The position numbers were made by a program, and so were the translations under genes. Positions 10,147 to 61,300 of a stretch of DNA of 64,000 bases are shown piece by piece. The notes under the pieces were generated by a model. The model searched no databases and was not told the DNA's origin. It worked only from the letters and a program-made list of their open reading frames with translations. Source of the stretch: Lepidodermella squamata (Eukaryota > Animalia > Gastrotricha). The stretch spans positions 2,852,001 through 2,916,000 of the forward strand of contig JBLDXI010000001.1 in the NCBI GenBank assembly GCA_047495785.1, read 5' to 3'. Numbering within the stretch: the stretch's first letter is position 1; every line of letters starts with the position of its first letter.

Positions 10147-12134
10147 TTATTGTAAAACATGAACAAGCACTATGAATAGCAAGTTGAGTAACGTTAACCG
10201 TTGCAAGCTAGCGTTTGAGCTTTGTTGAAGTGGCGTGAAATTCCAGTTGTCCAGGGTTTTCGCAATATATTCCTGCGGCCGGCAATCACGGTCGAAATTA
10301 TGGAAAGGAAGATCTTTGAGGCGCGTGAATATTTGAAAAACTCGTCGAATCTGAAATGAAAGGAAAAATTAATAAAATCCAAGTATCCGGAATTTAGCTT
10401 ATGAATTTTTACTTCAATATTTTCGATAAATGGAACCCCTTCTCTCACGAAAAATAAACAACGATGGAAACACGATTTGCTCGCGACCCGTCTAAACTTC
10501 AATTAGGTACCGTAGCCCATTTCAAGAGGGCCTTGGAGGAAAGGGCGAGTCGAGCAAGCCGTTTGCCGCGAACTCGGCCTGGGCACAGCTGTTGTTACCG
10601 TGGGCTGAATTCATACAGGCACCTGATTTTCCTTGGATCAAGCCGCTGAAGGTGGCTATTGCTAAGAAGTACCACAAATGGATGGCCGAAGAGATGGACA
10701 AAGCAGGCACTCGAGGAGGTAATTAAAACCCTCGCCCTTCGAATTGGTTTGTCAATGGGTTAGCGAGGCGGGGTGGGAGGATCTAAATGCGCCACTGGTT
10801 CCTAAGTCGTTCCGGTCTGTAGTATCAAGTATCAATGCTGTGGATGGTAGCGAGGACAACGAGATCTCCTGCATGAAACCCGGCAACGGGGCGATCAAGA
10901 TTCTGCAAGCCAAAAATCAAAAGCCGATCGTGCCACTGTATTTTGTTGGATGCGAGGTGTTAGATGCTGCCTAATCCCAATGCAGACCTTCGCGCTAGGC
11001 GATTGGCCGCCAAGGAAAAAGCCGTCGCATTTACGATTTCGGCCGTAGCTGCAAAAACGTTCAGCAAAACTTCTGACAGCATTTTCAAGCCAAAAAATCA
11101 TACACGCCTTCTCTGTTACTGAACGTGCTGTTCAAAACCTAATCTGATTTCACAAACTACCAGTAACTACCTTACATTGGTAGCAGCGGTTGCGAAAACG
11201 ATGACGTGAAATTAGTTCACGAGGATGATGATGATGATGATTCGTATTTTCGAATTCGATAGAATTTAAGCGAGTGCCATCCAAAAAAATCGCCCATCTC
11301 TATCAGTAGCCCACTTTTTGGAATTTTCGGGGTTACAAATTAAAGCGGCTGCTATTGGAACAATTACGGTATGTATAATTTTACCGTTAAATCACAATAA
11401 TTTTCGAAAAATAGTTGTTACGGAGAACTAACCTCTTTTCCGAGCCAGTCAGCATAAAACGTTTTCAGCCCATTTTGCGCAGATTTCTTACACGCAGCTT
11501 GAATTCCGAGCAAAACGCAATCGATGACGCGTTCGAACAAAGTGCAAACACTCGTCGCCTGCGAGTTATCAATGGCTAGAAAGGCCTCAGTCGTGATGCA
11601 TTTCGGCGATCTCAGGTACGACGAGTAGTCCAGCATACAATACCGATATTCTGCATAATCATACATTCTCTGCTGATCGTCGCATAGCGTTGAGCCGGGG
11701 AATAACAGAATCAGAACGTTCGACAGCGAATTAAAAGCCGGGTTGTTAGAAATCAGCCGAACTCGCTCGATTAGACCAGTCGAATCTCGCCAGAGCGTAG
11801 TCGGGGTGACGCGAGACCGCCATAACGTGTCATTTACCAGCTGAGTGAACGTTAAACAGCGATAGCTCGATTTGGCTTTATTTATCGCGCATTGAATAAA
11901 TTTTTGTAAGGCAGCCTGATTTTCGGTTGAGCACAACGCGTCTCGAACGCGGAAAGTTTTCGCCTCTTGTACGTTGATAGCTTGATCGACTCGGTCGACA
12001 GCATCTGTGAGGGTGATATCAGGTGGGCACTTTTCTTTGATCGCCCAATAATCACACGGCTCGGGCTCCATCGATTGTGCGATGCAAATTGAGATCAGAT
12101 TCAACAAAATCACAACAGTTGGCTTCCATTTCAT
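10147..12134 (-). CDS. Orphan secreted Cys-rich protein with probable GPI-anchor signal, 2 exons
   Basis: Signal peptide MKWKPTVVILLNLISICIAQ and spaced Cys in exon 11433-12134. Phase-0 splice to exon 10147-10350 reads IRRVFQ...DCRPQEY...QQSSNASLQRLTLLNLLFIVLVHVLQ* (small-residue site followed by hydrophobic tail). Confidence 0.8.
10510..11369 (+). mobile_element. Degenerate pogo/Tigger-like (Tc1-mariner superfamily) DNA transposon remnant in an intron
   Basis: Broken translation ~10630-10900: KPLKVAIAKKYHKWMAE..TRGGN*KPSPFELVCQWVSEAGWEDL...KSF...NAVDGSEDNEISC, matching the C-terminus of pogo DDE_1 transposases. Flanked by TA|CCGTA ... TACGG|TA. Confidence 0.75.
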
Positions 12135-12245
12135 TTTAAGGATTAACCCTATACGAGAAGAGCAGAACATTCAGCAAAATCGACTTCAATTTATCATTGC
12201 AACAGTCAAGCTCAAGATGGAAAAAATAATTGCTAACATCCGATT

Positions 12246-13772
12246 CTAATTAGATCGCAACATTTGATAAAGCCTCGAGTTAGCTTTCAAATACTCAATA
12301 ATTTCGTCTTTGCTGAGCGAATCTTGGTCACTAATAGCCTTGTCAATAGCAATGACCCCAATCAGAATTTCACATTTCCCAGCAGTATTGACAACTATAT
12401 TAATATCCGATTCTGATGATTTGAAACGTTTAGATTCAAGGATCCACTCGCCAGAGTTTGAGGCGTTGAAAGGCAGAGAGCAAAAAGTTTGAGAACCATC
12501 CACCGACTCGAGTACTATCGCGCCACCGTTGTCGCAGCAAATGACTTGGTAGGCAACGACTACGTGATAATAAATATCGATTTCAACCAAAGAAATCGGA
12601 AAAACATCGATCTTGCCGGCTGAATTGAGCGAAATTTCTAAGCATGAGCTGCCCATAAATGCTGTTTTATCTGTTATTGAACAAGTTTCAGAGCTTGAAG
12701 TGTGGCATGGGGATTGTATGGCAAGATTATAACAGGGCGGATTATCGCATTTAACGCCGAGCCAGTAAGAATCTTTGACATTGCTAGTACAGAATGAAGT
12801 AAGAAAAGGTACCGCGAATCGCTTTTTTGCAGGCAACAAGCTTGCAAGGTCTCTCCAGAATGTTTGCTGATTTCTCAAGAAATCGCAGCTCGGCAACGTT
12901 TCGAAGACCCATCCAAAAGCAAAAATCGCAATCGATAAGTTCGCTTCGACAGCTTTCTCTACTGCTAATTTCGTGTCAAAGCCCCCGCCCCCGTAGCAAT
13001 TTCTGCCGAAAACGTCAATTCCAACGTAAACATCAAACTGCCGATTTGTTGCCTTGGCTAGCTCGAATGAATTGCTCAAGTTTTCCGGAGTCCAGGTGTA
13101 ATTGAGAAAAATTCCATCACATGCATTGAAATAAGCTTCGTTAAGAGAATTGAGTTCATTCTGCCATTTCAATTTGCCATCAGGATAAGTAACGCTGTCG
13201 TACCATAATGTTATACCCCCGCTGATAGCCTGTCGGATTTTCTCGGCCAATCGTTGAGTTAATCGAAGAACCAAATCTGTCTGGCCGCAAACTTTATTTT
13301 CGATATTCAACAACCAGCCATCAAAACCATAATGAACAGCTATTTCTACAAGCTTATCAACGAGACCATCGATAACTTCAATACTATTAAGCTGATTCTT
13401 CCATATTTCAAGACCAGTATCGAACTCCGTGATGAAAGTGCCAATAACTTTCACTCCATTAGCTTTGGCAACTTCAATCCAAGAGCGTGGAGGAATGGTA
13501 ACGAATTCATGAGAGAAATAAGTAAATATGTCAACAGAGCGCCAGTTCCAAAACGAAAACCCGAATCCTTCCTCCTCAATGCAACCACATCCTTCGTCAA
13601 ATCTATCGGCCAAGTAGCCACCTTTCATGTCATGGCAAAGCAAAACTTTAGCACGATCAGAAGTTGTGTCTTGTTTTACATAACGGGTATAAAATTCAGC
13701 TCTCTGGCCTTGTGGCTGCCAAGACATCAAATCTGCCAGCGTTTTCAGTGGGAGTGTGCATTTTTGGGCCAT
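12246..13772 (-). CDS. ENGASE: Cytosolic endo-beta-N-acetylglucosaminidase (GH85)
   Basis: Single-exon 508-aa ORF with VLLCHDMKGGY, DIFTYFSHEFVTIPP, catalytic YGFDGWLLNIE, WYDSVT..GKLKWQNELN, DGIFLNYTW, VYVGIDVFGR. Confidence 0.96.
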   Translation of the reverse strand: MAQKCTLPLKTLADLMSWQPQGQRAEFYTRYVKQDTTSDRAKVLLCHDMKGGYLADRFDEGCGCIEEEGFGFSFWNWRSVDIFTYFSHEFVTIPPRSWIEVAKANGVKVIGTFITEFDTGLEIWKNQLNSIEVIDGLVDKLVEIAVHYGFDGWLLNIENKVCGQTDLVLRLTQRLAEKIRQAISGGITLWYDSVTYPDGKLKWQNELNSLNEAYFNACDGIFLNYTWTPENLSNSFELAKATNRQFDVYVGIDVFGRNCYGGGGFDTKLAVEKAVEANLSIAIFAFGWVFETLPSCDFLRNQQTFWRDLASLLPAKKRFAVPFLTSFCTSNVKDSYWLGVKCDNPPCYNLAIQSPCHTSSSETCSITDKTAFMGSSCLEISLNSAGKIDVFPISLVEIDIYYHVVVAYQVICCDNGGAIVLESVDGSQTFCSLPFNASNSGEWILESKRFKSSESDINIVVNTAGKCEILIGVIAIDKAISDQDSLSKDEIIEYLKANSRLYQMLRSN

Positions 13773-14948
13773 AACGCTCTACCTGTAATAAGAGACCTAG
13801 CGGTAGTCAATAACAGTTAACTATAAGCGTCGAGCGTCGAGACCGAAGTGAGAGTGCTAAAAGTTTTATCTGGCTCATGGCTCATAACGTACTAAAGCTC
13901 GAATTACCACAGAATAAGCGATTATCTGGTTATTAATCAATTATACACTACTTCAACTGGGGTCAGTTGTTGGAAGTCAGGAAACAAATCGAACAGGAAG
14001 TCACCCAACAAAAGCGGTTAACTCAGTCTAGGACCTCCACCAGTTGCGCAAGTTTTTAAGACGCCATACGGCCTTCACACATGATAAAAGCGACGCATGT
14101 GCGGTGAAGGTCGTGTGCGCAGAGTGGCGGGAAATTCAAAATCAACAGTGTTATCGCGCATGCCCATCGCACAACCTCGATTTTCCTGTGGTAAAATATA
14201 TTTCAGGTATCAAAAATGTACAATAAAGAGAGTAAAACTGCAAGGCTATCAAATCTCGAATCTCTAGCTATCGCATAATCATAATCACTACTACACACTG
14301 CTTAATTCTGAAGTTGAGCTGAAGTCCTTCGGGATCCGTCGGTCACTCGGTGATTAGGATTTCCAGTTATTGACATGCCTATCAGCGTTACACGAGTATA
14401 ACACATGGCTGAGCGTTGTTCGCTCATAAAATCTGAGACTTAGCGTTTATCAAGCGTCACTGTATTGCCTTCGGTAGACATCTAAAGCGCGCCTCTAGAT
14501 AGCTATGTTGAAAACAATATGATGAGTGTTTTAGACTAGACTTTTTCGGCGCTGAGTTATGGTTGATTCATTGCCCTTGATTCACTAGCCAGTTCGGATT
14601 CAGCAATCTCATAAATAGGTGACCTGTGACGATTGGCTAAAAGAATCCCATAAAGTGTGTATATTTTGCCCGGTTTTATGTTGAAAATGATGACTCAGTT
14701 ACAGACCAATGTCGTTTCTTTATTTATAATACATTTCCAATTTCAAACAAGCACAAAAATGTCAGGTCCCAAAAATAAGGAGCGGAAAAACTAACCACAA
14801 CGTAGCACAACATGAAAATCGCATACACTATTCAATTTATAATTTAGGCTAACAGGCGATCTTTGATCTCTTGAAACAATTAGTTGCACTTGGGCGCTGA
14901 AAGATTTGAAGTGAATACAGCATCAGCAGTGGACGCGTGCTCGAACGA

Positions 14949-17900
14949 TCACAGTTGGCACCTCCTATTAGTCGCGAGCTTTAACTGAGTGAACCGGTCA
15001 AAGTCGAGAACGCTCAGTCTCAAGAGAGCGAAACCGCCATTTTTCGATTCTTCGTTGGCGGAAGCCAGGGATCGCTCGATGTCAACAGCTAACCGCGATA
15101 ACAACCGCAGTAATTGCAGCCGACGTAACGATTGGCATCGTGTGGGTTTGAAATCAAATGAAGACTCCAATGATAGCAGATCTGTTTGGCGCTGCCACAA
15201 GCGCCGTTGTAACCAAAAAATGTGGGCTAATTGGCGACGAAGACACGACGAAGTAGCACCGGTAGATAGACCGCAAGCTAGCAGCTTGTCAGCAAGCGGC
15301 AAATTTCGCCACACACTTGTAACTAACTGCGAGCTTGGGGCATGAGGTATCTGAACAGCCGCAGCATTTCTAAATCGAAAAAATGTTCAAATCTGCGATA
15401 AACACGAATTCAGGAAACCTACGTTGTACCATGTGGGTATAAAACCAGAGAGGGGTAATGAGGTACCGAGAAGACATTATCGCTATAATGACCGCCGCCA
15501 GTTCGATTCTTGCGGCCGAAAGAAATAGGCTCAGACACTTGATCACTATCTACGACGTGAACGAATCGAAACCTCGCTAAATTCCGCTCAAAGTGCTGAA
15601 CAGCTAAGAGAATGCGAGGCTTCAACACGCCGCAAAAAACACACCAAGGCGCGTCGTAGAAAACCAAAGTTGGGACATTGTTGGTTTCAGGCAACCAGTC
15701 GGGTAGTTTCAATTTTTCCGAGGTGGTTTGATCGCCATCGCTGTGATAAGTTTCGGTTAACCAATCAACAAGATGATTGACAGCGCCACTTTCCTCGCTT
15801 TGATCGCCAATAGCCGAGACGTTGATCAGTCGAACTGGCGATTCCTGCCTAGCATCGAGCAGGTACACTCCCGTCGGGAGATTGAGCGGCTTTCTTGGGC
15901 CGAAATGATGATTCAGGGCGGGCGAGGCCGAATGGTTGAAAATTACACCGACTCCGCCGTGGTGTTCGGCAACAGCGAATGAAACTCGCATTGCTTCAGC
16001 ACCGTATCGACTGGGTAGTTGCCCGGACTCGTCTCGGCAACCCCGACCGATAAGTTGCGACATCTTATCTAACTCCACACCGCCATCCTAGGTGAACAAA
16101 AAAATGGTTCAAAAATAATACTAATAATACTAATAAAACTAATAATAAATCAGCGTAATACAAAGCGATATAGTTTTCTGAATAAAACTGACTTTTCATT
16201 ATTTTATTCCACAAAATAAAAGAAATAAAATTCCAAGGTCTTATGTTAGTATTTCTCAGCGCAATAAAATATGTTTGGAAAATAATTTAGAACAGAAAAC
16301 GATGATTTGTCGCAGACAAAGCCCCCTAAAATTAGGCAGTTTCTGGGGTATTTAGAAATATTTTGGCTCTTGAGCCTATCCGCAACTGATCAGCTACAGG
16401 CGTGCAAGGAAAGTCGTGCTCTCAAGGCAAAAAATAGAAAATCGATATAGCCGTTTTTATGTTTAGTACATGAAGAAGTACTTTGAAGCGCCTCCCATCG
16501 GTAAATGCAATCGGTAAATCCCTCGCTCCTCAAAATGATTCTGGCATGATTCAATCAACATGGTTCAACGTCTCCACTGCACAGATACAAGATGGAACAA
16601 TCGTACAAGTTTCAAACGCTAGGTTCATCAAATCCTAGGCTTTGACGTTGAACAGAGCTCAAGGTCAATCTTTTGAGTTTGTCGGGCTCTCCTTTCCCAC
16701 TCCGCCTTTTGCCACTGGTCAACTATACGTCGGCTTATCCAGAGCGGCAGATTGTCGCCGAGTCAAAATAATGGTTTCTCCTGATTATATAATAGACAGC
16801 AAATTCTACACCCGAAATGTTGTCTATTATGAAGTCCGGTAACGGGATCAGAGTTTCAGCTCTGTTGCGTGCAGTTAACATAAGTTTGCAAGAGTTTGTT
16901 CGCAGAAGCTAAAGGCCAAAACACAACGCAATAGTCTGCCGTTCTTGACCACAACTTAGCGTCTTTTTTCCACTAAATTGGACAGTGTTGCATTAATTTA
17001 CTGCTATTTTATCCATAATAAAAATATCGGATTTTGTTCAAAGTCGAACCTGACCACTTTGGAAATCATCATAATTCGTAAATCGTACGTCATCGCTTTA
17101 TAACCTCCTTAGATAGAAACTTCAAATATCGCGCCAACGGGAAAGAGTCTAGTTCTTTCACCAGGCGCTTCATTTGACAGATTTTCATCACCAACTGAGT
17201 TTTTCTGCGTGCCCTGATGACTCTTTTTCCAATAAGCATGACTAAAACAGCCACTCAAACCAGCCTTTCAACAGTTACTCAGCCTGCCGAATCGACTCAA
17301 GAGCAAACGACGAAAACAACGCCCGGTCAATCAGCTACGATTTTCGACCTGCTCACCAACATCAATGATCCGAAAGTTACTATCGTCCTCACCCCCGTGT
17401 TCACAGGTCATGTTCAGAAAATCACTTCAATTTCTCGGCTGGGTAACTCCAATTGTCCCTGATTTTTAGTTAAGAATATGCGAAATGAGCAAAAACATAC
17501 CTGCAGTAGCCTGAAATGAAGCGGGGCGAACTTGGATTTATCGCCAGATAGCCGCAGCAGTTCTCGGCATTGCGCCTCTTCAGTTGCCAGACTAATCGTA
17601 ACTTCGGACAGCAAATCAGAATGTGTTCGATTCGGCGTAACACACTCGCTATGAAGCCAAGAAGCCGCCTTAATCAACGCCACTCCAGGGTTGCAAAACT
17701 GCGGACCAGTCGTTGGCAAGAAAGAATTCACGACCGCGACAACAGCTCGATCGATCCCGCGATCGACCGGGGGTAGCTCAGCCACACCTGTTTCAGGTGA
17801 TGACTCACCTTGTTTTGGAATTTTAGGCGGCTGGGTGTTGGACGCTGGTTTCGGAGGCAACCAACCAGTCCAGTTCGTTGGCACAGCTGATAGTTGTAGC

Positions 17901-18720
17901 GAAATTGGCGTATAGAAATAAGGCAGGCCTAGTCGAATAGTCGGAAATAAAGAATGGGGAACGAAAACCGGCAAAGCTCCGACCATCACAGACCGAATTC
18001 CAACTTTGAGCATATCACCAGATATGGATCTCATTTTCAGCGGTTTTTCGATCGCCATAGCATTTTTCACGAAATTTCTCGGCGAATCTGGCTCGATATT
18101 TGAGTTTTCAGTCTCGTTAATAGCGACGACTATCAGGTACGAAGACGGAGCTAAAAGTCGCAAGCCAGCCAGGGTATGAACATCCGCGGCTTGGTGGAAT
18201 GGAAACGAGAATTTGTACGCGAAAAGCAGCAGTTCAGACTCAGATAATACTCCAGTATAGAAAACATGGCCGGTGAAGTGGGTGAAGAATGAAATGTAGG
18301 GATAACCGCCTTTCAGGCTGAAAGCAGACCGGCAAGTTCCAGTGCCCGGTTGCCAGCAGTTAATGGCGAGAAATTGGAAATTTTGCCGCGCGTGTTTACC
18401 AGCTAATCTTTCAAAAACTGGGCGGAAATGCACCGAAGACCTTGACCAAGGTGCGTAAAATAAAACTATAGCGGCTTCTGATCGATTAAGATAGCGAGAT
18501 AACGAGTCAATACTTCCGTCGTAAATATCCGCAAAATGTGGCGAGGGCGAAGGGCCTTCGAATAGTGGGCCAGGTAGTGGTTGAAGTCGAGTTATTTTTC
18601 CACTGTCTCCCATCAGGAGGGAGATGGGAAGCCAGCGAAAAAAGCTGGCAATCAGCAGTAAATTCGATACGCCTGTCATTACAACCGCCACGTAAGTTGA
18701 CAGCATAATATAGGAGGCAT
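14949..18720 (-). CDS. TXNDC11: Thioredoxin domain-containing protein 11-like (N-terminal TM, two Trx folds, C-terminal helical/coiled region)
   Basis: N-terminal hydrophobic segment; Trx1 FYAPWSRSS...LAINCW...CR...YP; Trx2 FYDAPWCVFC...VPHYPSLVLYP; last two exons splice in frame (stop 14949). Start could be 18720 or 18706. Small middle exons at 17160-17460 could not be resolved by eye. Confidence 0.8.
16113..17152 (+). mobile_element. Non-autonomous Helitron remnant in TXNDC11 intron
   Basis: 16642-16842 encodes the PIF1-like helicase C-terminus (TLNRAQGQS..VGL..P..F..GQLYVGLSR...TRNVVY.EV). 3' end GCGCCAACGGGAAAGAGT-CTAG|T with CTAG at 17149-17152. The ATACTAATAAT repeats near 16113 are taken as the approximate 5' end. 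Confidence 0.75.
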
Positions 18721-30299: not shown

Positions 30300-30856
30300 T
30301 TCGGAGGATAAACTAATCATTACTCATCATCATTTGTTTATGCTTTTCCAAAGGTTTGCTGAAAAAAACTGAGATTGTCAAAATTGTACCTCGCTTGACA
30401 AAGTCTTTACCTTTATTTACCTGTTCGATGCTCCAAGCCTAAACTGATTTAAGCTGGCCTTTGGCATACAAATTAGTGCCAAGTTATTATGGTGACATCA
30501 GATTTCCCAAATTCAACAATCCTGAATGTTTATAATTTATTTTAGAAAAGAGTGTCGGCAGTTACTGGTCGGCAGTTGTCAAAATTGTACAGCTCATTTT
30601 ACAGCCAAGAGCTCTATAATGAATAAACATTGAGAAGAAGGCCAATTAGATACTTTATTTTGCTATTCCGTGCCATCCAAGATAACAAATTTCATTTGCT
30701 TATTTGAAGAGAATAATCAACTCTGGTATATGTCGTTGAACTCAGTGATGAAATCAAAAAAGACATAATAGCGAAGGTTGTTATTCTTAAAAGCACTGAT
30801 CGACTCTTGAATAAGTAAGGTATCATTGAGCTCAAACTGAACACCGGTTATATCTG

Positions 30857-33823
30857 TCACGGCTGCTGATCGAAGCGGTCGTGCTTGACTTTTGTTCTTT
30901 GCAGACGGTCCGCCAGTTCATTATTGATCAACGAATCTGCTGCCGGATTTGAAATAGTCAGCGATGATAACGTCTGGTTGAGCTGACGCGTGTCCAAGTC
31001 AAAAAATTCAGGTTCAACCTCGACGATAGGCATTTCTTGCCAACATATACTTTTGCCGCAACCAACAGTGTTTTTTTCTGCCATATCCAGATTCACATCG
31101 AGCTGTCTACGCCCAGTAATGGCGTCTCTGTAGAGCTTGATGCTATGATCGGCGATATGTGGCATAAGCCAGGCCTTCGAGCCGCTGATTGCTTTTTGAT
31201 AGCTCGTATTAGTGTGATCGAGCATTAAGCTCATTTGGTGCAGTGCATCAACTTTGTGAAAATCGAGAGGAAAAGCAAATAGCTCATTGAGAATATTGTT
31301 AAGCAACACCGCAGTTCGCTCATTGTCTTGGCAATTTTTAACAATAAGCCCGGCCTTAGCAGCTATCAGCTTGTCCACCATTTCAAGCCAATTTTCGTAG
31401 AGTTCAAACTTCATCAGCAACACAGTCATTTCCTGCCACATCCCAACGATATCGAGATTGCATGATAAACTTTCTTTATTGCGTGGATTGTGATTCAAAA
31501 ACGTGAAAATACTGCGAAGACTCCCAACAGATATGCTGTCAAGTTGGCTTTTGCGAAAGTCAATGCGCTTGACCTGGCTTAAAGGTTTTACCGTGATGGG
31601 CGCTTTATCAAATACGTAACCATCTGATTTATTCGCGGCCTTCTTCCAGAGCCATTTGAAAATTTTCCTACCCGAATGGAACACAGAGACGGCGGATGGC
31701 AGAGATCCGCAGAAAGTAGTGCCGTCGCAACCTTCCACGCGAGTCCAGACACAGTTACAATATGGACACTTGCGAAACGGATGCTCCGAGTCAAGGCTGC
31801 CTTCCAAATGACTTCTCGACTGTAAACAGTGATCAAAATACGCTCTCACTTTGGAATTCAGCTCCTCGCGCAAGTATTTCGACCAGTAGTAATCGTCAAC
31901 TCTTGTAACGTCCAGGTTGTTTTCGCGCACGAATTCCTCAACCAATTCGTTGAAACGCTGCTTCATATCTTGAAGCATGCACAACATAAAATCTTGCCGT
32001 TCTAACGGTCCCTTGATACGCTGGGCATTGTCGACGACGGATTTTACGAAGAGGCTCGCCTCGGCTATAGCATCGCCAGCCGATTTCAGAACACCCTGTT
32101 CATTTCTTCTGAGGTCAAAGTAACGTGAAAGATCTTCGACTGATATTTCGATCACCGCAGCTCCCGTCAAATGGTGCTGGCCTATACAGTCGACGAATAG
32201 TTCCTCAACATGCGACATATCTTTGGAGATGTAAAGCGTACTGTCGACGCCGAATCGCTGAGTCATTTTCACCTGAACGCGACGTTGAACCTCAGCTTTA
32301 CTCGTTCGTAATTTCTCGGCGAAATCCCAATGTGTCACAACGATTGTAATGTTGTTCTTCAAATCAGCAGCTAGCGGATCAACAACACATGCCACGTCGG
32401 TCACCATATTATCCATGCGGTTGTCAAATTTGCATAGTACAAAAATTCGCGTGAGAGGTCGATACCGCAGCGCGTTTGCTATGTGAATAGCATGGTCGAC
32501 ACGGTTATCTATTGACCTGTAGCCAGGCGTATCGGCGAATTCAAACATTGGCATTGAATAAACTGTGGTCTCAGTTGTGACACTCTCGTCGAAGTCGCTT
32601 GTCACCAACGGTTTCCGAATCAACCGCTCTGCTAGTGTAGTTTTCCCGCAACCAACTGCACCAATGAGAACGATATAGGGCAAAGCTAGTAAACATAAAA
32701 TTTGAGTTGGGGATAACTTTTAAAGAAATAGAAAAGCTCAGAACTCAAGTAGGGATGCTCGGCAGCTTGTGACATGGTGAAACGGTCGATAGGTGAATCT
32801 TTGAGAAGGTTATTGACTAGATCATCCAGTTTAGCGTTGTAACCACAATCGGAGGGTTTAATTTGCCTATTGAGCTGTGAATAACAGTACATGATATTGT
32901 TTATTGTTCACATCTAGCCTAAAAAAAACGGTATTCCTACCTTCAACTCGAAAGTAGCCATCTCATTGATTGTAACGCCGAGTGACCAGTTGTCACACTG
33001 CTGTGTGTATTTTTGCCCACCTCTGAACTCAGGCGCGAGGTAAGGCAGAGTTCCAGCTGGCGTATCTGTTACCCTAAACCGACCAAACTAAAAACCAACA
33101 CTCGATTCTAAAATCTCATTTAAATTACTCATCCTCCCGTTTCGCCAATCCGAAGTCGCCAAGTTTAATGACACGCTGATTATCGCTTAGCAGAATATTC
33201 TAGAGGGATGAAAGAGTAATTTTTCGGCAAATGCAGCTTGTCATTTTGATTTACATCTGGCTTGATGTCGCGATGTACAAGAGAGCAATTATGCATGTAG
33301 TTGAGTGCATCGACCATTTGCTTTGACCATGACAGCAGAACTAGCTGGGGCAAACGTTCACGATTAAAGACAGCTTTATTGATGGCTTGGCGCAACGATC
33401 CGCCATCACAGTATTCCATCAAAATACAAAGAGTTTGTTCGCTCGCATCTTCTGTAAAATCAGACGAATTTAAGTCGTGTAGACGGAAACGTACTTCGAA
33501 CCTATGACGATCGCATCAAACACGGCAACTACGTTCTTGCACTGGACGTACTTCATGTTTTCAGCCTGCAAAATGTAATTATTATTTTGTTGGGATTATG
33601 ATGCGGCTATAACCTCCAGCAGAACTCCTTTCCACAACTTCTCACCCAACTCCTGACTGCCCCTTGTTTTCGACATCAATTTAGATTTGACGACTTTTTT
33701 TAGAGCGTAATGAGTATTCCCCGCGTTGCTTTCCTTAACCATAAATACATCTCCGAAGCTGCCTGAACCCAGTGGTCGGATGGTGTCGTAAAATCCTAGC
33801 CTGTCCAATGATTGTGTAGCCAT
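30857..33823 (-). CDS. Ser/Thr kinase (NEK-like) fused to AIG1/GIMAP-like P-loop GTPase and Cys-rich C-terminal region, ~877 aa, 7 exons
   Basis: Exons 33614-33823, 33502-33565, 33255-33451, 33129-33199, 32941-33073, 32745-32874, 30857-32685 sum to 2634 nt with no internal stop. Kinase motifs GSGSFG, YALK, MEYCDGG, HRDIKPDN, KLGDFG, YLAPE, DNWSLG. GTPase motifs GAVGCGKT, SVT, DTPG, VVTHWD. The GTPase ORF has no ATG ahead of its P-loop and is preceded by a splice acceptor. Confidence 0.82.
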
Positions 33824-39184: not shown

Positions 39185-41419
39185 ATGCCATCGAAAAAGC
39201 CGCACCAGGGAGCAATTGGAAATGTAAGTATATACTAATATTTTTTTCAGGTTCCTTGCTTATGCCAATTTTTCTTAGGGCGAGATGTGAAGTCCTTGTG
39301 GGGGCTAATTGCGACGAGAGCGTACGGTTCAAATTCATGGAAGAATCGAAAACGATCATATCAGTTATGGCAGGCTAATAAGCCTTTCGAGCAAGTTCCG
39401 CTGCCACAATCCGAAACATCCGAAACTTCGTCGCCATCTTTCTCAGCTGAATCGTTTATCGTCCGCGTTAAACAAACCGAAAAATTCAACCCTGTTCTCA
39501 AGCCGAGCGGGAAGACTAAAGGTGGCAAGGATAGATTCAAATTCAAGTTTGAAGATGGCTGGGCCGACCAATTGAGAGCAGCAGCGAAGCCGATCATCGG
39601 CTGCTTATTTTTCCCCAAAGATCACTACGTGAGCTCTGGGTTGATTATGGCGTCAGGGACAGGGAGTTGTGGCTACCCAAAATGCCGATCGCTTAGCTTC
39701 ACTGTCAGCTTGGACAGCATCGATGATGGTTTTCTAACTTTCGAGTTCAAAGTTACCAAAGGTCGGTCAATCATAAACTGATAATTGTGCTAAAAAATAA
39801 CAAGCTGAATTTGCATTTAGGGGAATTCAACCATGAGGGTGAACCCCGAAGGGAGAAAATCCAAGGTGAGAAACGGGCTGAAATGGCTGAACGGCTGAAG
39901 AAATCTACCGCGGTGAAGGTATTGGGCGAATTGTGCTCTGCAATGCCGGAATGCGAAGCTCCCGAGTTGGCGACTTTACACAAAATTCAATCGGAAGAGA
40001 TTAACTTGGGTAAGTATATGTTTAACTTGTTTATCATGGATGTTTATTCAATCGTCTGTCATTTTAGTGGGACGCGCTGACCCCGACCCCTATCGAGATT
40101 TGAGCGCCCTCAAGGCAGAGCAGATCAGCCAGGGAAGGCCATACATTCGTGATATTATTGTAAGCTTACTCGTTGAATGCCTAGTTACTTGTCTCAAGTA
40201 ATTTATCGTAGGATCCCTTTGGAGTTTACCTCTATTTCGAAATTTCACTCGACCTTTTCTTTGAAGCGGTTAAAAAAGGTTACGTAATATTAAACTTCGA
40301 CGCTACGTCTGGAATTTGGAAGATCGACCTGCTTACTGGAAAACGAGTCTTCTACTACGCTATGCTCCTAACCACTGCTGAAGGCCAGGCGTTGGATTAC
40401 CCCGTTGGCGAGTTCATCTCCGCCGTCCAAACATCTGTATGCATCGGCAAAAAGAAGTCGATGCGACCTCTGCACCACCCGAAACTCAACAAAGTTACTT
40501 ATCAAACGTTGATGCGAATTCGAGAGCGTTGGCTTCCTCCAGCTCAAATTCCTAGCTGCGCGGAGGCGGATTCACGGCAACTTGACGCTTTCTTGTCGGA
40601 CGATTCTAACCCTTCGTCTTCGGCTGATCCAATTGCACGCGAAAACCAGCAACCTTCGCAGGCTGAATTACCCCAGATTCCTCAAAAGAGAGGTCGTGGA
40701 AGACCAAGGAAGCTGGTCGAAGATGTGGCGCCCCGTAGCCAGCGTTTGCGTCCGCGTGAAACCGCCCCGACACGCTTTGCTACTGACTTGGCTTCATCTG
40801 CACCTACTGCACCAGCCTCTACCGCGCCAGCCTCTGCCGCGCCAGCCTCTGCTGCGCCAGCCTCTGCTGCGCCAGCCTCTGCTGCGCCAGCCTTTGAAGA
40901 AGCGCCCCGACCTTCGCTAAGCGAGCTGAGGCGTTATTTCCGAGAAAGACAGTTTTTCCTGAAAAAGATTGCAGGTGACGGGTCATGCCTGTTCGGCTCG
41001 GTTGGGGACCAGCTGGCTGTCGTATGCGAGCAGCTAATTTCGGCGCTTCAACTGCGTCAAGACGTGGTAGAATACTTCAGGATTAACAAGGCACGAATGA
41101 AAGGCTTCCTGCGAGGATTTTTCGCAGAAGAGATGAGCGGCGAAGTCTCGGACGACGACTACGACGGATGGGGTTAGTTGCAATATTCTACCTTGCTAAA
41201 AGTTTCAAATTTTTCTACGTAGTCGACAACTTGGCCCTACCTGGTTCGTTCGCCGGCGAAGAGGCGCTCGTCGCAATCGCCGAAATGTATGGAGCACGAA
41301 TAATTATACACCGTTACAATGGCCCGAGGACTGTCGTGGCGGCGCCAGAGGGACACGCGGCCGAATTAAACATTTTCTTTAACGGCCGCGACCATTACGA
41401 TAGCCTTCGTAGACTATAG
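39185..41419 (+). CDS. Internally deleted MULE transposase fused to AT-hook, PASAA repeats and OTU cysteine protease, ~662 aa, 6 exons
   Basis: Exons 39185-39223, 39251-39761, 39821-40009, 40068-40159, 40212-41172, 41223-41419 total 1989 nt, open. MULE-like DPFGVYLY..LNFDATSG..VFYYAM..PVGEFIS; KRGRGRPRK; OTU IAGDGSCLFGSV...FAGEEALVAIAEMYG...NGRDHYDSL. Confidence 0.85.
40811..40893 (+). repeat. 15-bp coding minisatellite (CCAGCCTCTGCTGCG, PASAA), ~5 copies
   Basis: Direct tandem repeats within the MULE ORF linker. Confidence 0.9.
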
Positions 41420-58316: not shown

Positions 58317-61300
58317 CTATAGATACCACAGGCCGTTCAGAGGATAGTATGCGATTGGTTGTGCTCGTAGTCTATTTAAACAAGGTAACATCCGTTGACA
58401 GGGAGATGATGCTTGAGCGGTTGCATTGGCAGCTGCGTTCGTTGCATTTTGTTGAGGCGCTACAGTTGTTTGAGCTTGCTCTTGTTGACGTTGTTGCTGC
58501 TGGACGAGGAAGAAAGGAATGCCGTAGTTTTGAAACGGGAACCACGGCATCAAACCAGAAGCACGGTTCTGCCAAAGAAGGCCGCGTTGCGACTGATTAT
58601 CATCATCGTCTTCATCACTGCTATCATCATCGTCACCAGCTGACTGCTTACCCGGCATAGTCAAGTTAAGTTTCGGCATATTCCACGCGTTTTGCGTTTG
58701 ATTCTGCTGGAGTCCAAAGCCTCGCAGGATAGCAGGATTCCACAGTGCAGACGGATCAGCAACAACTGGCATACTTGGCTGATCGACCTTCATTGTTCCA
58801 TTGCCAGAGGCCCATTGTCCCCAAGAAGGCCATTGCATCGGTTGAGTTTGCACCGATTGGTTGTTGTTCCAGAATCCGTTGGAAACATCAACATTCAAAT
58901 TCAGATTAGCATTAGCCATGCCGAATTGACTACCCTGCGATGAATTCTGGTTCAAGTTGAAAGGATTCCAATTAGGCAAAGATGGGAAGCTAAATGCGGG
59001 CATTTGAGGCTGAGTCCAATTTTGTGGGCGAACAGCGCCTTGTTGGAAAACGCTTGGGTCGACCCACGGCAGAGATGGCTGCTGCTGTTGCGGCTGAGCC
59101 GACGGCAGTTTAACTTGAGAAAACAGACTGGTAAGTAAGTTGGTGTTGATGACGGGAGCTTGGGGCATCTGGTTCTTCCAGGCGCTTTGTAAGGCGTCTT
59201 GGTAAACGAATGGGAGCTGGGGCTGGGACTGATTAGCCTCGACTTTGGCTGGGGCAATGTCGATAGCGGGGAGATTCAAGTTTCCGACACCACCCAGGCC
59301 AGACTGGAGCCAGCCATTCCAATTGGATGCGCCACTCTGAGGCCTCATAAATTGACTAAATATATCCATAGGCTGCTGGGCCTGGCTTTGGTTGACATTC
59401 TTACTGACGTTCCACTGATTGACAAACGGAAGCGACTGACCGGCGTTCAGCTGGGGAAGGTTAAAACCACCTAAGAAATCTTGACCAAGAATGCTAACTT
59501 GCGGCATCTGTGGCATAGTCTGGTTTTGCGCGTTCTGAGACTGGTTCCAGTTGTTGTTCCAATTATTGGCCACGTTAACATTGGGCAATTGAATTTGTTG
59601 GAAGATATTCGGCATAGCGAGGCCGCCAGGCTGCTGTTGAGACTGGTTGTTGTTATTCATTCTCGAGAAAACATCAAAGTTGAAGTTGGGCAGTTTAAGG
59701 TTCTGGCCACCGAGCATCCCTTGGAGAGCATCAGGGGCGACAAAAGGCATCTGAGGCTGTTGCGCAGGCATTTGCTGGCTTCGGTTCCACTGCTGCGGCT
59801 GCCACTGCGATTGATTCATATTCGGCTGCATATTATTCAAGCCGCCAAAGCCAAAGCCTTGAAGCATGTTGAATCCTGGCAGTTGGCTCGGCTGACCAGG
59901 CAAAGCGTTGGAGTTATTATTGTTAAACAAGTTCTTGAACAAATCGCCGCCGAGCAAATTGGATGTCCAGTCATTCGAGCTCTGTTGAACTGGAGCGGTA
60001 ACGTTAACTTGCGGTAAAACATTGCGAAGAAGGTCGTTTGACAAAAAGTTGTTTGAACCGTTCTGCTGAAGGAGATTGTTCGTCAAAAGACCGCCGAAGA
60101 AGTTTTGCGACAAGAAGGGATTGATATCTCCGATGAGCACCTGCTTCGAAGATTCGTTAACTGACGGCTTCTCAGTGCTCATCTGCGGAAGGAGTTTGTT
60201 CCAGTCAAGCGCTGGCTGCTGAGATGGTTGGTTGCCGAACAAAGAGTTAAAATCAAAGAGCTGGTTCTGGAGACCCGGCAAGTTCTGGAAGTTCCAGCCA
60301 AACATCCAAGGAGCATTAGCGTCGTCTGGTTTAACAGTTGTTGTAGTCGGTGCAGCTGGGGTAACTGTTGTAGGCTCGGCGGTTGTCTCCGGGAGAAGAG
60401 GGCTGAAGCGAACTGGAACCTGGGAAGCAGGCTCTGTAGCAGGTGCCCTGGTTCGTCGGGTGGTGGGTTCCTCCGTTGTAGTCGTGGTTGTGCGACGAGC
60501 TGGTCGTGTGGTTTGTTCCTCGGTAACTTGCTCCGTGGTGGTAGTGGTAGGGCGTGTTCTACGAGTTGTCTGCTCCTCAGTAACTTCCGGCGCCGGAGTG
60601 GTTGGACGGGTCCTACGAGTTGATGGCTCATCAGTGACGACAACTTCCGGAGGTGGGGGAGGGCGGGTCCTACGTGTTGGCGGCTCGGGCGCAGGTGCTG
60701 GGGTTTCGTTTCCACCAGCCCCCTGGCTGCTAGGCCCAGCATTTGCGTTGGGGCAGGTGTTGCGGAAAATCAAGTTGCTAACAAAGTCAGTGTCCTGAAT
60801 TTCATCGGAATCTGGGTAAGCTAAGAGGTAATCCGGCCGGGTTGCAAGAGAGCGAAGGTAATCCGAATCGTAGTCGCTGCCGAAACCAATGATGAAAATG
60901 CGAACGCCCAACTGCTTCAGAAGGTTGGCTTGGTTAGAAGCAGTAGTGCGATTCGCAGGGTTCGACCCTGTGAAGACTACAACAGTCGAGGGGCTGCCAT
61001 CACGATGGCCGCCGGTGCTGTCAGTGAAAAGCTAGGATAAAAGAGAGAAATTGAAAAAAATCGACTTCAAGCGGTTATGACCAGACCTGGAGACGAACTG
61101 CGCGCAACGCCAGCGCCAAGTTGGCGTCGAAACCAAGTTCGTTCGAGCTTGTCGAGAAGACGTTAAGTGCTTCGCTGAGAGTTGGTCGCGGCGTGTAAGT
61201 GCCGAAATCGAAGCTAACTTGGACGTCGGAGGCGTACTCGACAACGGCGGCGCGCAAATCAGCGCAGTCGGGGATGGTTTGCGCGAACGTCGTCATCACC

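Follow-up and report, generated by a model that had tools for sequence, protein, structure and literature searches.

At positions 30857-33823 on the minus strand of the window, the 64,000-nucleotide stretch of the Lepidodermella squamata genome analysed here, lies a eukaryotic gene with short introns, in which a protein kinase is followed directly by a GTPase. Its seven exons join into a single frame, open over 877 codons with no internal stop, and public RNA confirms that the kinase and the GTPase are encoded by one spliced, expressed gene. The initial annotation had proposed that a 59-nt phase-1 intron (32686-32744) joins the end of the kinase to the GTPase, ...EHPYL-T-LPYIVLIGAVGCGKTT in translation, and that one open protein of about 877 amino acids (aa) results; both the joint and the open protein hold. 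Two public sequencing runs contain the stretch, X1 (2015, transcript-type) and X2 (2024, genome-type), the latter probably being the source genome run. The parts of the gene are the following.

30857..33823, minus strand: whole coding region, 7 exons, 877 codons plus stop; five introns are absent from the RNA contig and the other is placed by 9 loose letters
33823-33614, minus strand: exon 1 of the gene model, with the start ATG at 33823
33565-33502, minus strand: exon 2 of the gene model
33451-33255, minus strand: exon 3 of the gene model
33199-33129, minus strand: exon 4 of the gene model
33073-32941, minus strand: exon 5 of the gene model
32874-32745, minus strand: exon 6 of the gene model
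32685-30857, minus strand: exon 7, the whole 608-aa GTPase part, with the stop TGA at 30859-30857
33613-33566, 33501-33452, 33254-33200, 33128-33074 and 32940-32875, minus strand: introns of the kinase half
32686-32744, minus strand: intron 6, the junction between the kinase and the GTPase exon; 59 nt, phase 1, GTTCTG...TACTAG
30722..30856, minus strand: 3' untranslated region of at least 135 nt; X1 contig 1 spans 30722-32132 with no mismatch

The evidence for the fusion comes from an X1 contig of 1122 nt (depth 23, no mismatches) that runs from the GTPase exon through the kinase exons to exon 2. It aligns in the blocks 32200-32685, 32745-32874, 32941-33072/3, 33128/9-33199, 33255-33451 and 33502-33567, and it skips exactly 32686-32744, 32875-32940, 33074-33128, 33200-33254 and 33452-33501, all five skips being bounded by GT..AG on the minus strand. 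The skip at intron 6 is flanked by 130 and 486 matching letters, the 486 lying in the GTPase exon, and further X1 contigs cover the remainder of that exon and the untranslated region behind it. Past the exon 2 acceptor, nine loose letters of the X1 contig, TTCTGCTGG on the coding strand, equal the end of exon 1 before the GTTATA donor (33613), so intron 1 is placed at 33613-33566 and the length of the protein at 877 aa. A GTGAGA donor was also tried for intron 1 and breaks the frame, which the donor at 33613 restores. A short way upstream of the ATG at 33823, the frame is closed by a stop.

The two runs differ in the way expected of RNA and genome. X1 contains 72% of the sampled words of the stretch, which is the share that exons without introns would give. 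X2 carries the whole stretch unspliced in one long contig and none of the joined forms, which means that no processed DNA copy in the X2 genome accounts for the joined form. A check for RNA spliced at 32686-32744, suggested by the initial annotation, thus finds the spliced form in the X1 contig and the unspliced form alone in X2.

A different account of the locus is that it makes two products, with the kinase stopping at the TAG in a retained intron 6, the GTPase arising separately by read-through, from an internal promoter or by spliced-leader addition at the acceptor, and the spliced form being a minor by-product. The donor of intron 6 had been called weak, and GTTCTG does depart from the usual GTRAGT; moreover, an unspliced isoform may exist, as a rare one would be lost from the contigs. 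Within this gene, however, such donors are in use: GTT begins that of intron 2, where splicing is seen in RNA, and probably that of intron 1, and the only assembled RNA form is the spliced one, at depth 23 and without mismatch. The frame is open across all 877 codons, and the GTPase exon has no ATG ahead of its P-loop. Because the first Met of the GTPase frame, residue 44, comes after the P-loop, the frame offers no ATG from which the GTPase could start alone, and a product made alone would lose its nucleotide-binding loop. Upstream of the acceptor the frame contains a stop and no ATG, and the TTG "start" of the 608-aa open reading frame (ORF) is a product of an ORF lister that accepts TTG. 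We therefore consider two separate products very unlikely.

The donors of this gene are worth mentioning in their own right. GTT takes the place of GTR in three of the six, namely GTTATA (33613), GTTCGA (33501) and GTTCTG (32744), two of which are confirmed by RNA, and the L. squamata genome may be tolerant of other bases at donor position +3.

The protein encoded by the spliced gene consists of a kinase, a G domain of the TRAFAC class that follows with no linker, three helices, and a cysteine module of a one-zinc type that is split by a lineage-specific insert. ORF positions below refer to the 608-aa GTPase exon, and pLDDT is the predicted local distance difference test score.

32745..33823, minus strand: protein kinase domain in six short exons, aa 1-268; from Pfam Pkinase on the exon pieces, motifs and RNA joints
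32159..32685, minus strand: G domain, ORF aa 1-175; from MMR_HSR1, invariant family columns, pLDDT >90 and fold scores
31799..32140, minus strand: three long helices behind the G domain, ORF aa 182-295; in AlphaFold at 196-222, 226-254 and 262-295, pLDDT about 90-97
31577..31783, minus strand: first half of the cysteine module with beta-hairpins, ORF aa 301-369, CPYCNCVWTRVEGCDGTTFCG; from conserved Cys columns
31064..31576, minus strand: insert of about 170 aa between the halves of the cysteine module, ORF aa 370-540; family column occupancy 0.02-0.23 except one short island
30860..31063, minus strand: second half of the cysteine module, GCGKSICW (aa 541-548), and C-terminal helices (563-596); helices with pLDDT 86-97

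Successive segments of Pfam Pkinase (PF00069) match successive exon pieces: the two ends of the profile fall on exons 1 and 6, and exon 3 by itself reaches 41.6 bits, above the cut-off of 31.7. The motifs GSGSFG (position 19), ALK (40, with the VAIK-type Lys), HRDIKPDN (151), DFG (172) and APE (194) are present together with DNWSLG, in agreement with the earlier statement that all catalytic kinase motifs are intact. With the profile above its curated cut-off and every catalytic motif in place, the domain belongs to PF00069 and is an intact Ser/Thr-type protein kinase.

Other kinase sequences related to this one occur in both runs. At 33256-33295 and 33124-33166, other contigs from X1 and X2 match with 3-4 mismatches and then diverge, one of them, from X2, being 2085 nt long. 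Since X1 and X2 share these flanks, there must be at least one paralogous kinase gene, and it is probably expressed.

The GTPase part was compared with 1.84 billion representatives in an exhaustive HMMER search. This yielded 331 cluster representatives at E ≤ 0.001, of which 122 reached E ≤ 1e-10 and 10 reached E ≤ 1e-30, with phmmer E-values to family relatives reaching 1.9e-56. The exhaustive search was needed, as word-indexed searches with the single sequence or the family profile gave 3 proteins. In the ESM Atlas, the query adjoins the same clusters as the HMMER relatives. Most relatives are 440-480 aa long, and the named members come from Tetrahymena, Paramecium, Physarum, Pelomyxa and the cnidarian Clytia. 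Their common layout is a G domain, long helices, and then a zinc-ribbon-like module of the form CPxC..GCDGxTxCG..GCGxxIxW. One of them, Tetrahymena thermophila XP_001026731.1, shows the full layout and is annotated as the beta subunit of the signal recognition particle receptor, a name that is probably a mis-annotation from a weak SRPRB match.

An alignment of 57 members defines the family. Invariant or nearly so are G8, G13, K14, T36, D51, T52, P53, G54, R89 and D120, the last within THWD or THMD, and all members share the three long helices. In the cysteine module, the conserved pattern is C306-x2-C309-x9-C319-x5-C325-G followed, about 45-70 residues on, by G-C542-G-x4-W; C306, C309 and C325 are invariant, C319 is present in at least 90% of the 57 members, and G541, C542, G543 and W548 are nearly invariant. 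The motif of the first half of the module was present in 102 of 152 relatives. The fusion protein keeps every one of the (near-)invariant columns, and the 608-aa exon is accordingly assigned by its sequence to a distinct, widespread and unstudied eukaryotic family of stand-alone proteins. The initial annotation had not recognised this family or its conserved cysteine module. The two motifs of its cysteine module are 215 aa apart, as compared to the typical 45-70, owing to the insert, which is modelled by AlphaFold as helical with low pLDDT and has no match among the family relatives.

The G domain starts two codons past the splice acceptor. Its P-loop GAVGCGKT, T36 in switch I, DTPG and THWD correspond to G1-G4, which the initial annotation had rightly described as intact. 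The assignment of this domain to the AIG1/GIMAP group in the same annotation fared less well, and the immune role raised with it stays conjectural. In its favour are DTPG, the TxxD-type G4 and a Foldseek search with the AlphaFold model of the 608-aa exon (mean pLDDT 76; >90 in the G domain and the helices), in which GIMAP7 came top (E 1.5e-7), followed by FeoB, GIMAP2 and Toc34. On the other hand, Pfam AIG1 (PF04548) gave no match to the fusion protein at E ≤ 0.1, while MMR_HSR1 (PF01926) passes its gathering cut-off (24.7 bits vs 21.9), and the family profile matched EngA/Der best (5.6e-20), ahead of GIMAP4 (2.4e-10) and then Toc, TrmE and Era. Among the 57 members, 56 match MMR_HSR1, 31 FeoB_N, 23 RsgA and 16 AIG1 (the latter at E ≤ 0.001). 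VIA-align Z-scores are tied: Era 17.0 (root-mean-square deviation, rmsd, 2.7 over 163 residues), GIMAP7 16.3 (3.5 over 191), FeoB 15.7, Toc34 15.1 and Rabs about 14.8. The sequence and the model together place the G domain in the TRAFAC class, in the neighbourhood of Era, FeoB and GIMAP, and do not show it to be an AIG1 member. The claim that the protein is not of the ROCO type was borne out, with Pfam Roc at 14.2 bits, below its cut-off of 27, and no match to COR. Against PADLOC models of anti-phage defence, there were weak, P-loop-level matches to LeoA (E 2.5e-4).

The cysteine module was folded alone from a relative (P0001) with 48 aligned sequences, which gave a small beta-ribbon module and then a helix (pLDDT 79). 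A profile search of the PDB with the module found nothing significant, only the Nop10 zinc ribbon at E 0.3; Pfam returned scattered zinc-ribbon families and nothing consistent; Foldseek against the PDB had no match at E ≤ 0.001; and a shape search of the ESM Atlas recovered the module's own family alone. In an exhaustive VIA-align comparison, parkin RING2 (406-447) came first (Z 3.1, rmsd 3.1 Å, 42 residues), tied with rubredoxin, LysW, RING and U-box.

This likeness raises an alternative for what the protein does: the fusion would be real, and its output would be that of a thioester-forming, RBR Rcat-like ubiquitin-type ligase in the cysteine module, regulated by the kinase and the GTPase. 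The spacing C-x2-C-x9-C-x5-C with GCDG mirrors the C-x2-C-x9-C*-x4-C with GCNH of Rcat, five Cys are conserved where one zinc takes four, and C319 in GCDG would be the candidate catalytic cysteine for a ubiquitin thioester. Besides parkin RING2 at the top, VIA-align also lists parkin IBR and RNF31 IBR, and RNF216 gives a local match of 21 columns at 48% identity. However, no VIA-align Z exceeds 3.1, the level of rubredoxin, LysW, RING and U-box, and the Foldseek and PDB profile searches add nothing beyond Nop10. Pfam IBR or IBR_1 is touched by only 1 of the 48 members, at E 0.03-0.09. The fusion protein has no IBR match and no RING1, no E2-binding part is present, and the second Rcat zinc site is absent. 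The Rcat-like spacing is real as a pattern; as a sign of homology, and hence of a ligase, we give it little credence.

Among the family members compared, the kinase is peculiar to the L. squamata protein. None of the 152 fetched family relatives matched it by phmmer, and the longer relatives are tandem GTPase duplications or, in one case, carry a weak C-terminal NAD:arginine ADP-ribosyltransferase (ART) domain. The latter is Pelomyxa schiedti KAH3757173.1, in which residues 652-764, behind the GTPase-cysteine module, give the ART match at E 2.7e-4; the other long members (P0011, P0012, P0025, P0026, P0036 and P0059) resemble tandem duplications of P-loop/GTPase units. The kinase plus zinc-module GTPase architecture was not found described in the literature searched, nor was the GTPase family. 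The kinase-first, non-ROCO arrangement was unfamiliar to the initial annotation, and it remains so after these searches. A tblastn search of the 64-kb window with the fusion found the gene itself alone and no tandem paralogue.

In a maximum-likelihood tree, the query groups with four stand-alone proteins (support 97/90). One of the four, the closest homologue with a named source, lies on a 50-kb eukaryotic contig (L001) of AT-rich DNA with LINE-like genes; it has its own ATG, and no kinase exon was found within 10 kb upstream of it. L001 is a metagenome-assembled eukaryotic fragment of 32% GC, with LINE-like reverse transcriptase/endonuclease ORFs at 12473-15170 and 17391-17978. In the L. squamata gene, the kinase has replaced the short N-terminus of the GTPase family, and the presence of five introns in the 0.8 kb of the kinase half and none in the 1.8 kb of the GTPase half suggests that an intronless gene was captured behind a kinase gene.

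The same contrast in intron density could be read as a recent, neutral accident of gene capture, in which an intronless GTPase gene was exon-shuffled behind a kinase gene and the product has no integrated function. Consistent with this, the architecture is unseen outside this genome, both in the 152 relatives and in the 10 kb upstream of the L001 homologue. Yet the catalytic and the family-invariant residues are all kept in both halves, and the gene is expressed in X1. A seam of horizontal transfer was also sought by comparing GC at third codon positions (GC3) in the two halves, and no difference was found: GC is 0.46 in both, with GC3 at 0.50 and 0.51 in the kinase and GTPase halves. This equal composition means that the fusion event is neither recent nor compositionally visible. 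Altogether, we regard a neutral accident as unlikely.

The neighbours of the gene in the window are ordinary animal genes, encoding an OATP transporter, a GH85 ENGase, an FGGY kinase and a VWA protein. Proteins of nematodes, mites, rotifers and molluscs share at most 47% identity with this ENGase, as expected of an animal that has no close relatives in the collection searched. Several other reading frames of the window were noted. An 864-aa ORF at 58317-60911 on the minus strand is in one piece and has no Pfam match at E ≤ 0.001, and the same applies to ORFs at 17414-18706 (430 aa) and 11418-12170 (250 aa). An ORF at 40362-41177 on the plus strand has a weak OTU protease match (E 3.3e-4) that is below the cut-off.

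The architecture suggests how the two catalytic parts might work together. In the fusion protein a Tyr follows DTPG (DTPGY), where Ras has its catalytic Gln. Era, EngA, FeoB, GIMAP and Toc proteins are GTPases activated by nucleotide-dependent dimerisation or by cations, and with Tyr in place of Gln, as in the dimerisation-activated Era/EngA/FeoB/GIMAP GTPases, GTP binding would pair two G domains. The nearly invariant R89, located between G3 and G4, may act as a catalytic arginine finger. The C-terminus of the kinase (...EHPYL) runs straight into strand 1 of the G domain, and with the kinase welded to that strand, pairing of the G domains would fix two kinase domains side by side and allow trans-autophosphorylation. 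GTP hydrolysis would reset the switch, and the helices and zinc module may represent the ancestral partner- or target-binding part.

As a whole, the best explanation of the locus is an expressed 877-aa kinase-GTPase chain that acts as a GTP-gated, dimerisation-activated kinase, which we place just on the probable side. Several points weigh against it. Dimerisation and kinase activation are inferred steps, and no role is assigned to the insert or the zinc module. Exon-level matches of the kinase in the PDB are mixed (PKR, GCN2, Wee1, MAP3K, IKK, NEK and STE20) and do not discriminate, so no kinase subfamily is assigned. Exon 1 is represented in RNA by just nine letters, and the contigs, assembled from short words, cannot show one full-length molecule, which is pieced together and not seen directly, or rare unspliced isoforms. 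A bolder extension of the GTP-gated kinase is that the protein belongs to a family of single-chain switches private to this animal, in which GTP-driven pairing of a protist-type zinc-module GTPase would directly activate the fused kinase. Such proteins would form an undescribed class of sensors for cell-autonomous immunity or conflict, and the zinc module might contain a thioester-forming cysteine; we offer this reading as speculation with a low chance of being right.

Compared with its own family (XP_001026731.1, Paramecium octaurelia, Physarum, KAH3757173.1 and Clytia UniRef100_A0A7M6DPS4), the L. squamata protein aligns along the whole 608-aa exon and shares the P-loop, T36, DTPG, THWD, CPxC..GCDGxTxCG and GCGxxIxW. 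The family members, in contrast, are kinase-less proteins of about 440-480 aa that start 5-40 residues before the P-loop, and only the L. squamata copy has the insert of about 170 aa and a kinase in place of the short N-terminus. The fusion could give a first functional handle on a GTPase family that is widespread in eukaryotes (ciliates, amoebozoans and a cnidarian) and probably mis-annotated in at least one genome.

With GIMAP, AIG1 and Toc34 proteins, the GTPase part has in common DTPG, the TxxD-type G4 and a helical extension behind the G domain. It differs from them in that Era scores higher than GIMAP7 in Z (17.0 vs 16.3), EngA is the best profile match, and it lacks a membrane anchor, with 19-residue hydropathy peaking at 1.4, at the P-loop strand. 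Era, EngA and FeoB resemble it in the MMR_HSR1 match, in the best profile and fold scores, and in the hydrophobic or aromatic residue where the catalytic Gln would be; unlike them, it has no KH or membrane domain, and its C-terminal architecture is specific to eukaryotes.

The combination of kinase and GTPase is known essentially from ROCO proteins (LRRK2, DAPK1 and the Dictyostelium Roco kinases), in which the kinase is under the control of a G domain that acts as a dimer, and where the way in which the two domains talk to each other is an open question. Like these proteins, the L. squamata fusion carries a kinase and a G domain in one chain, and DAPK1 is also kinase-first. We infer that it functions as a variant of the multidomain kinase-GTPase switch, which differs from ROCO proteins in having no COR, no repeats and no linker where the kinase abuts the G domain. 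With its unrelated G domain and linker-free join, it would provide an independent and much smaller natural example in which to study the coupling of a G domain to a kinase.

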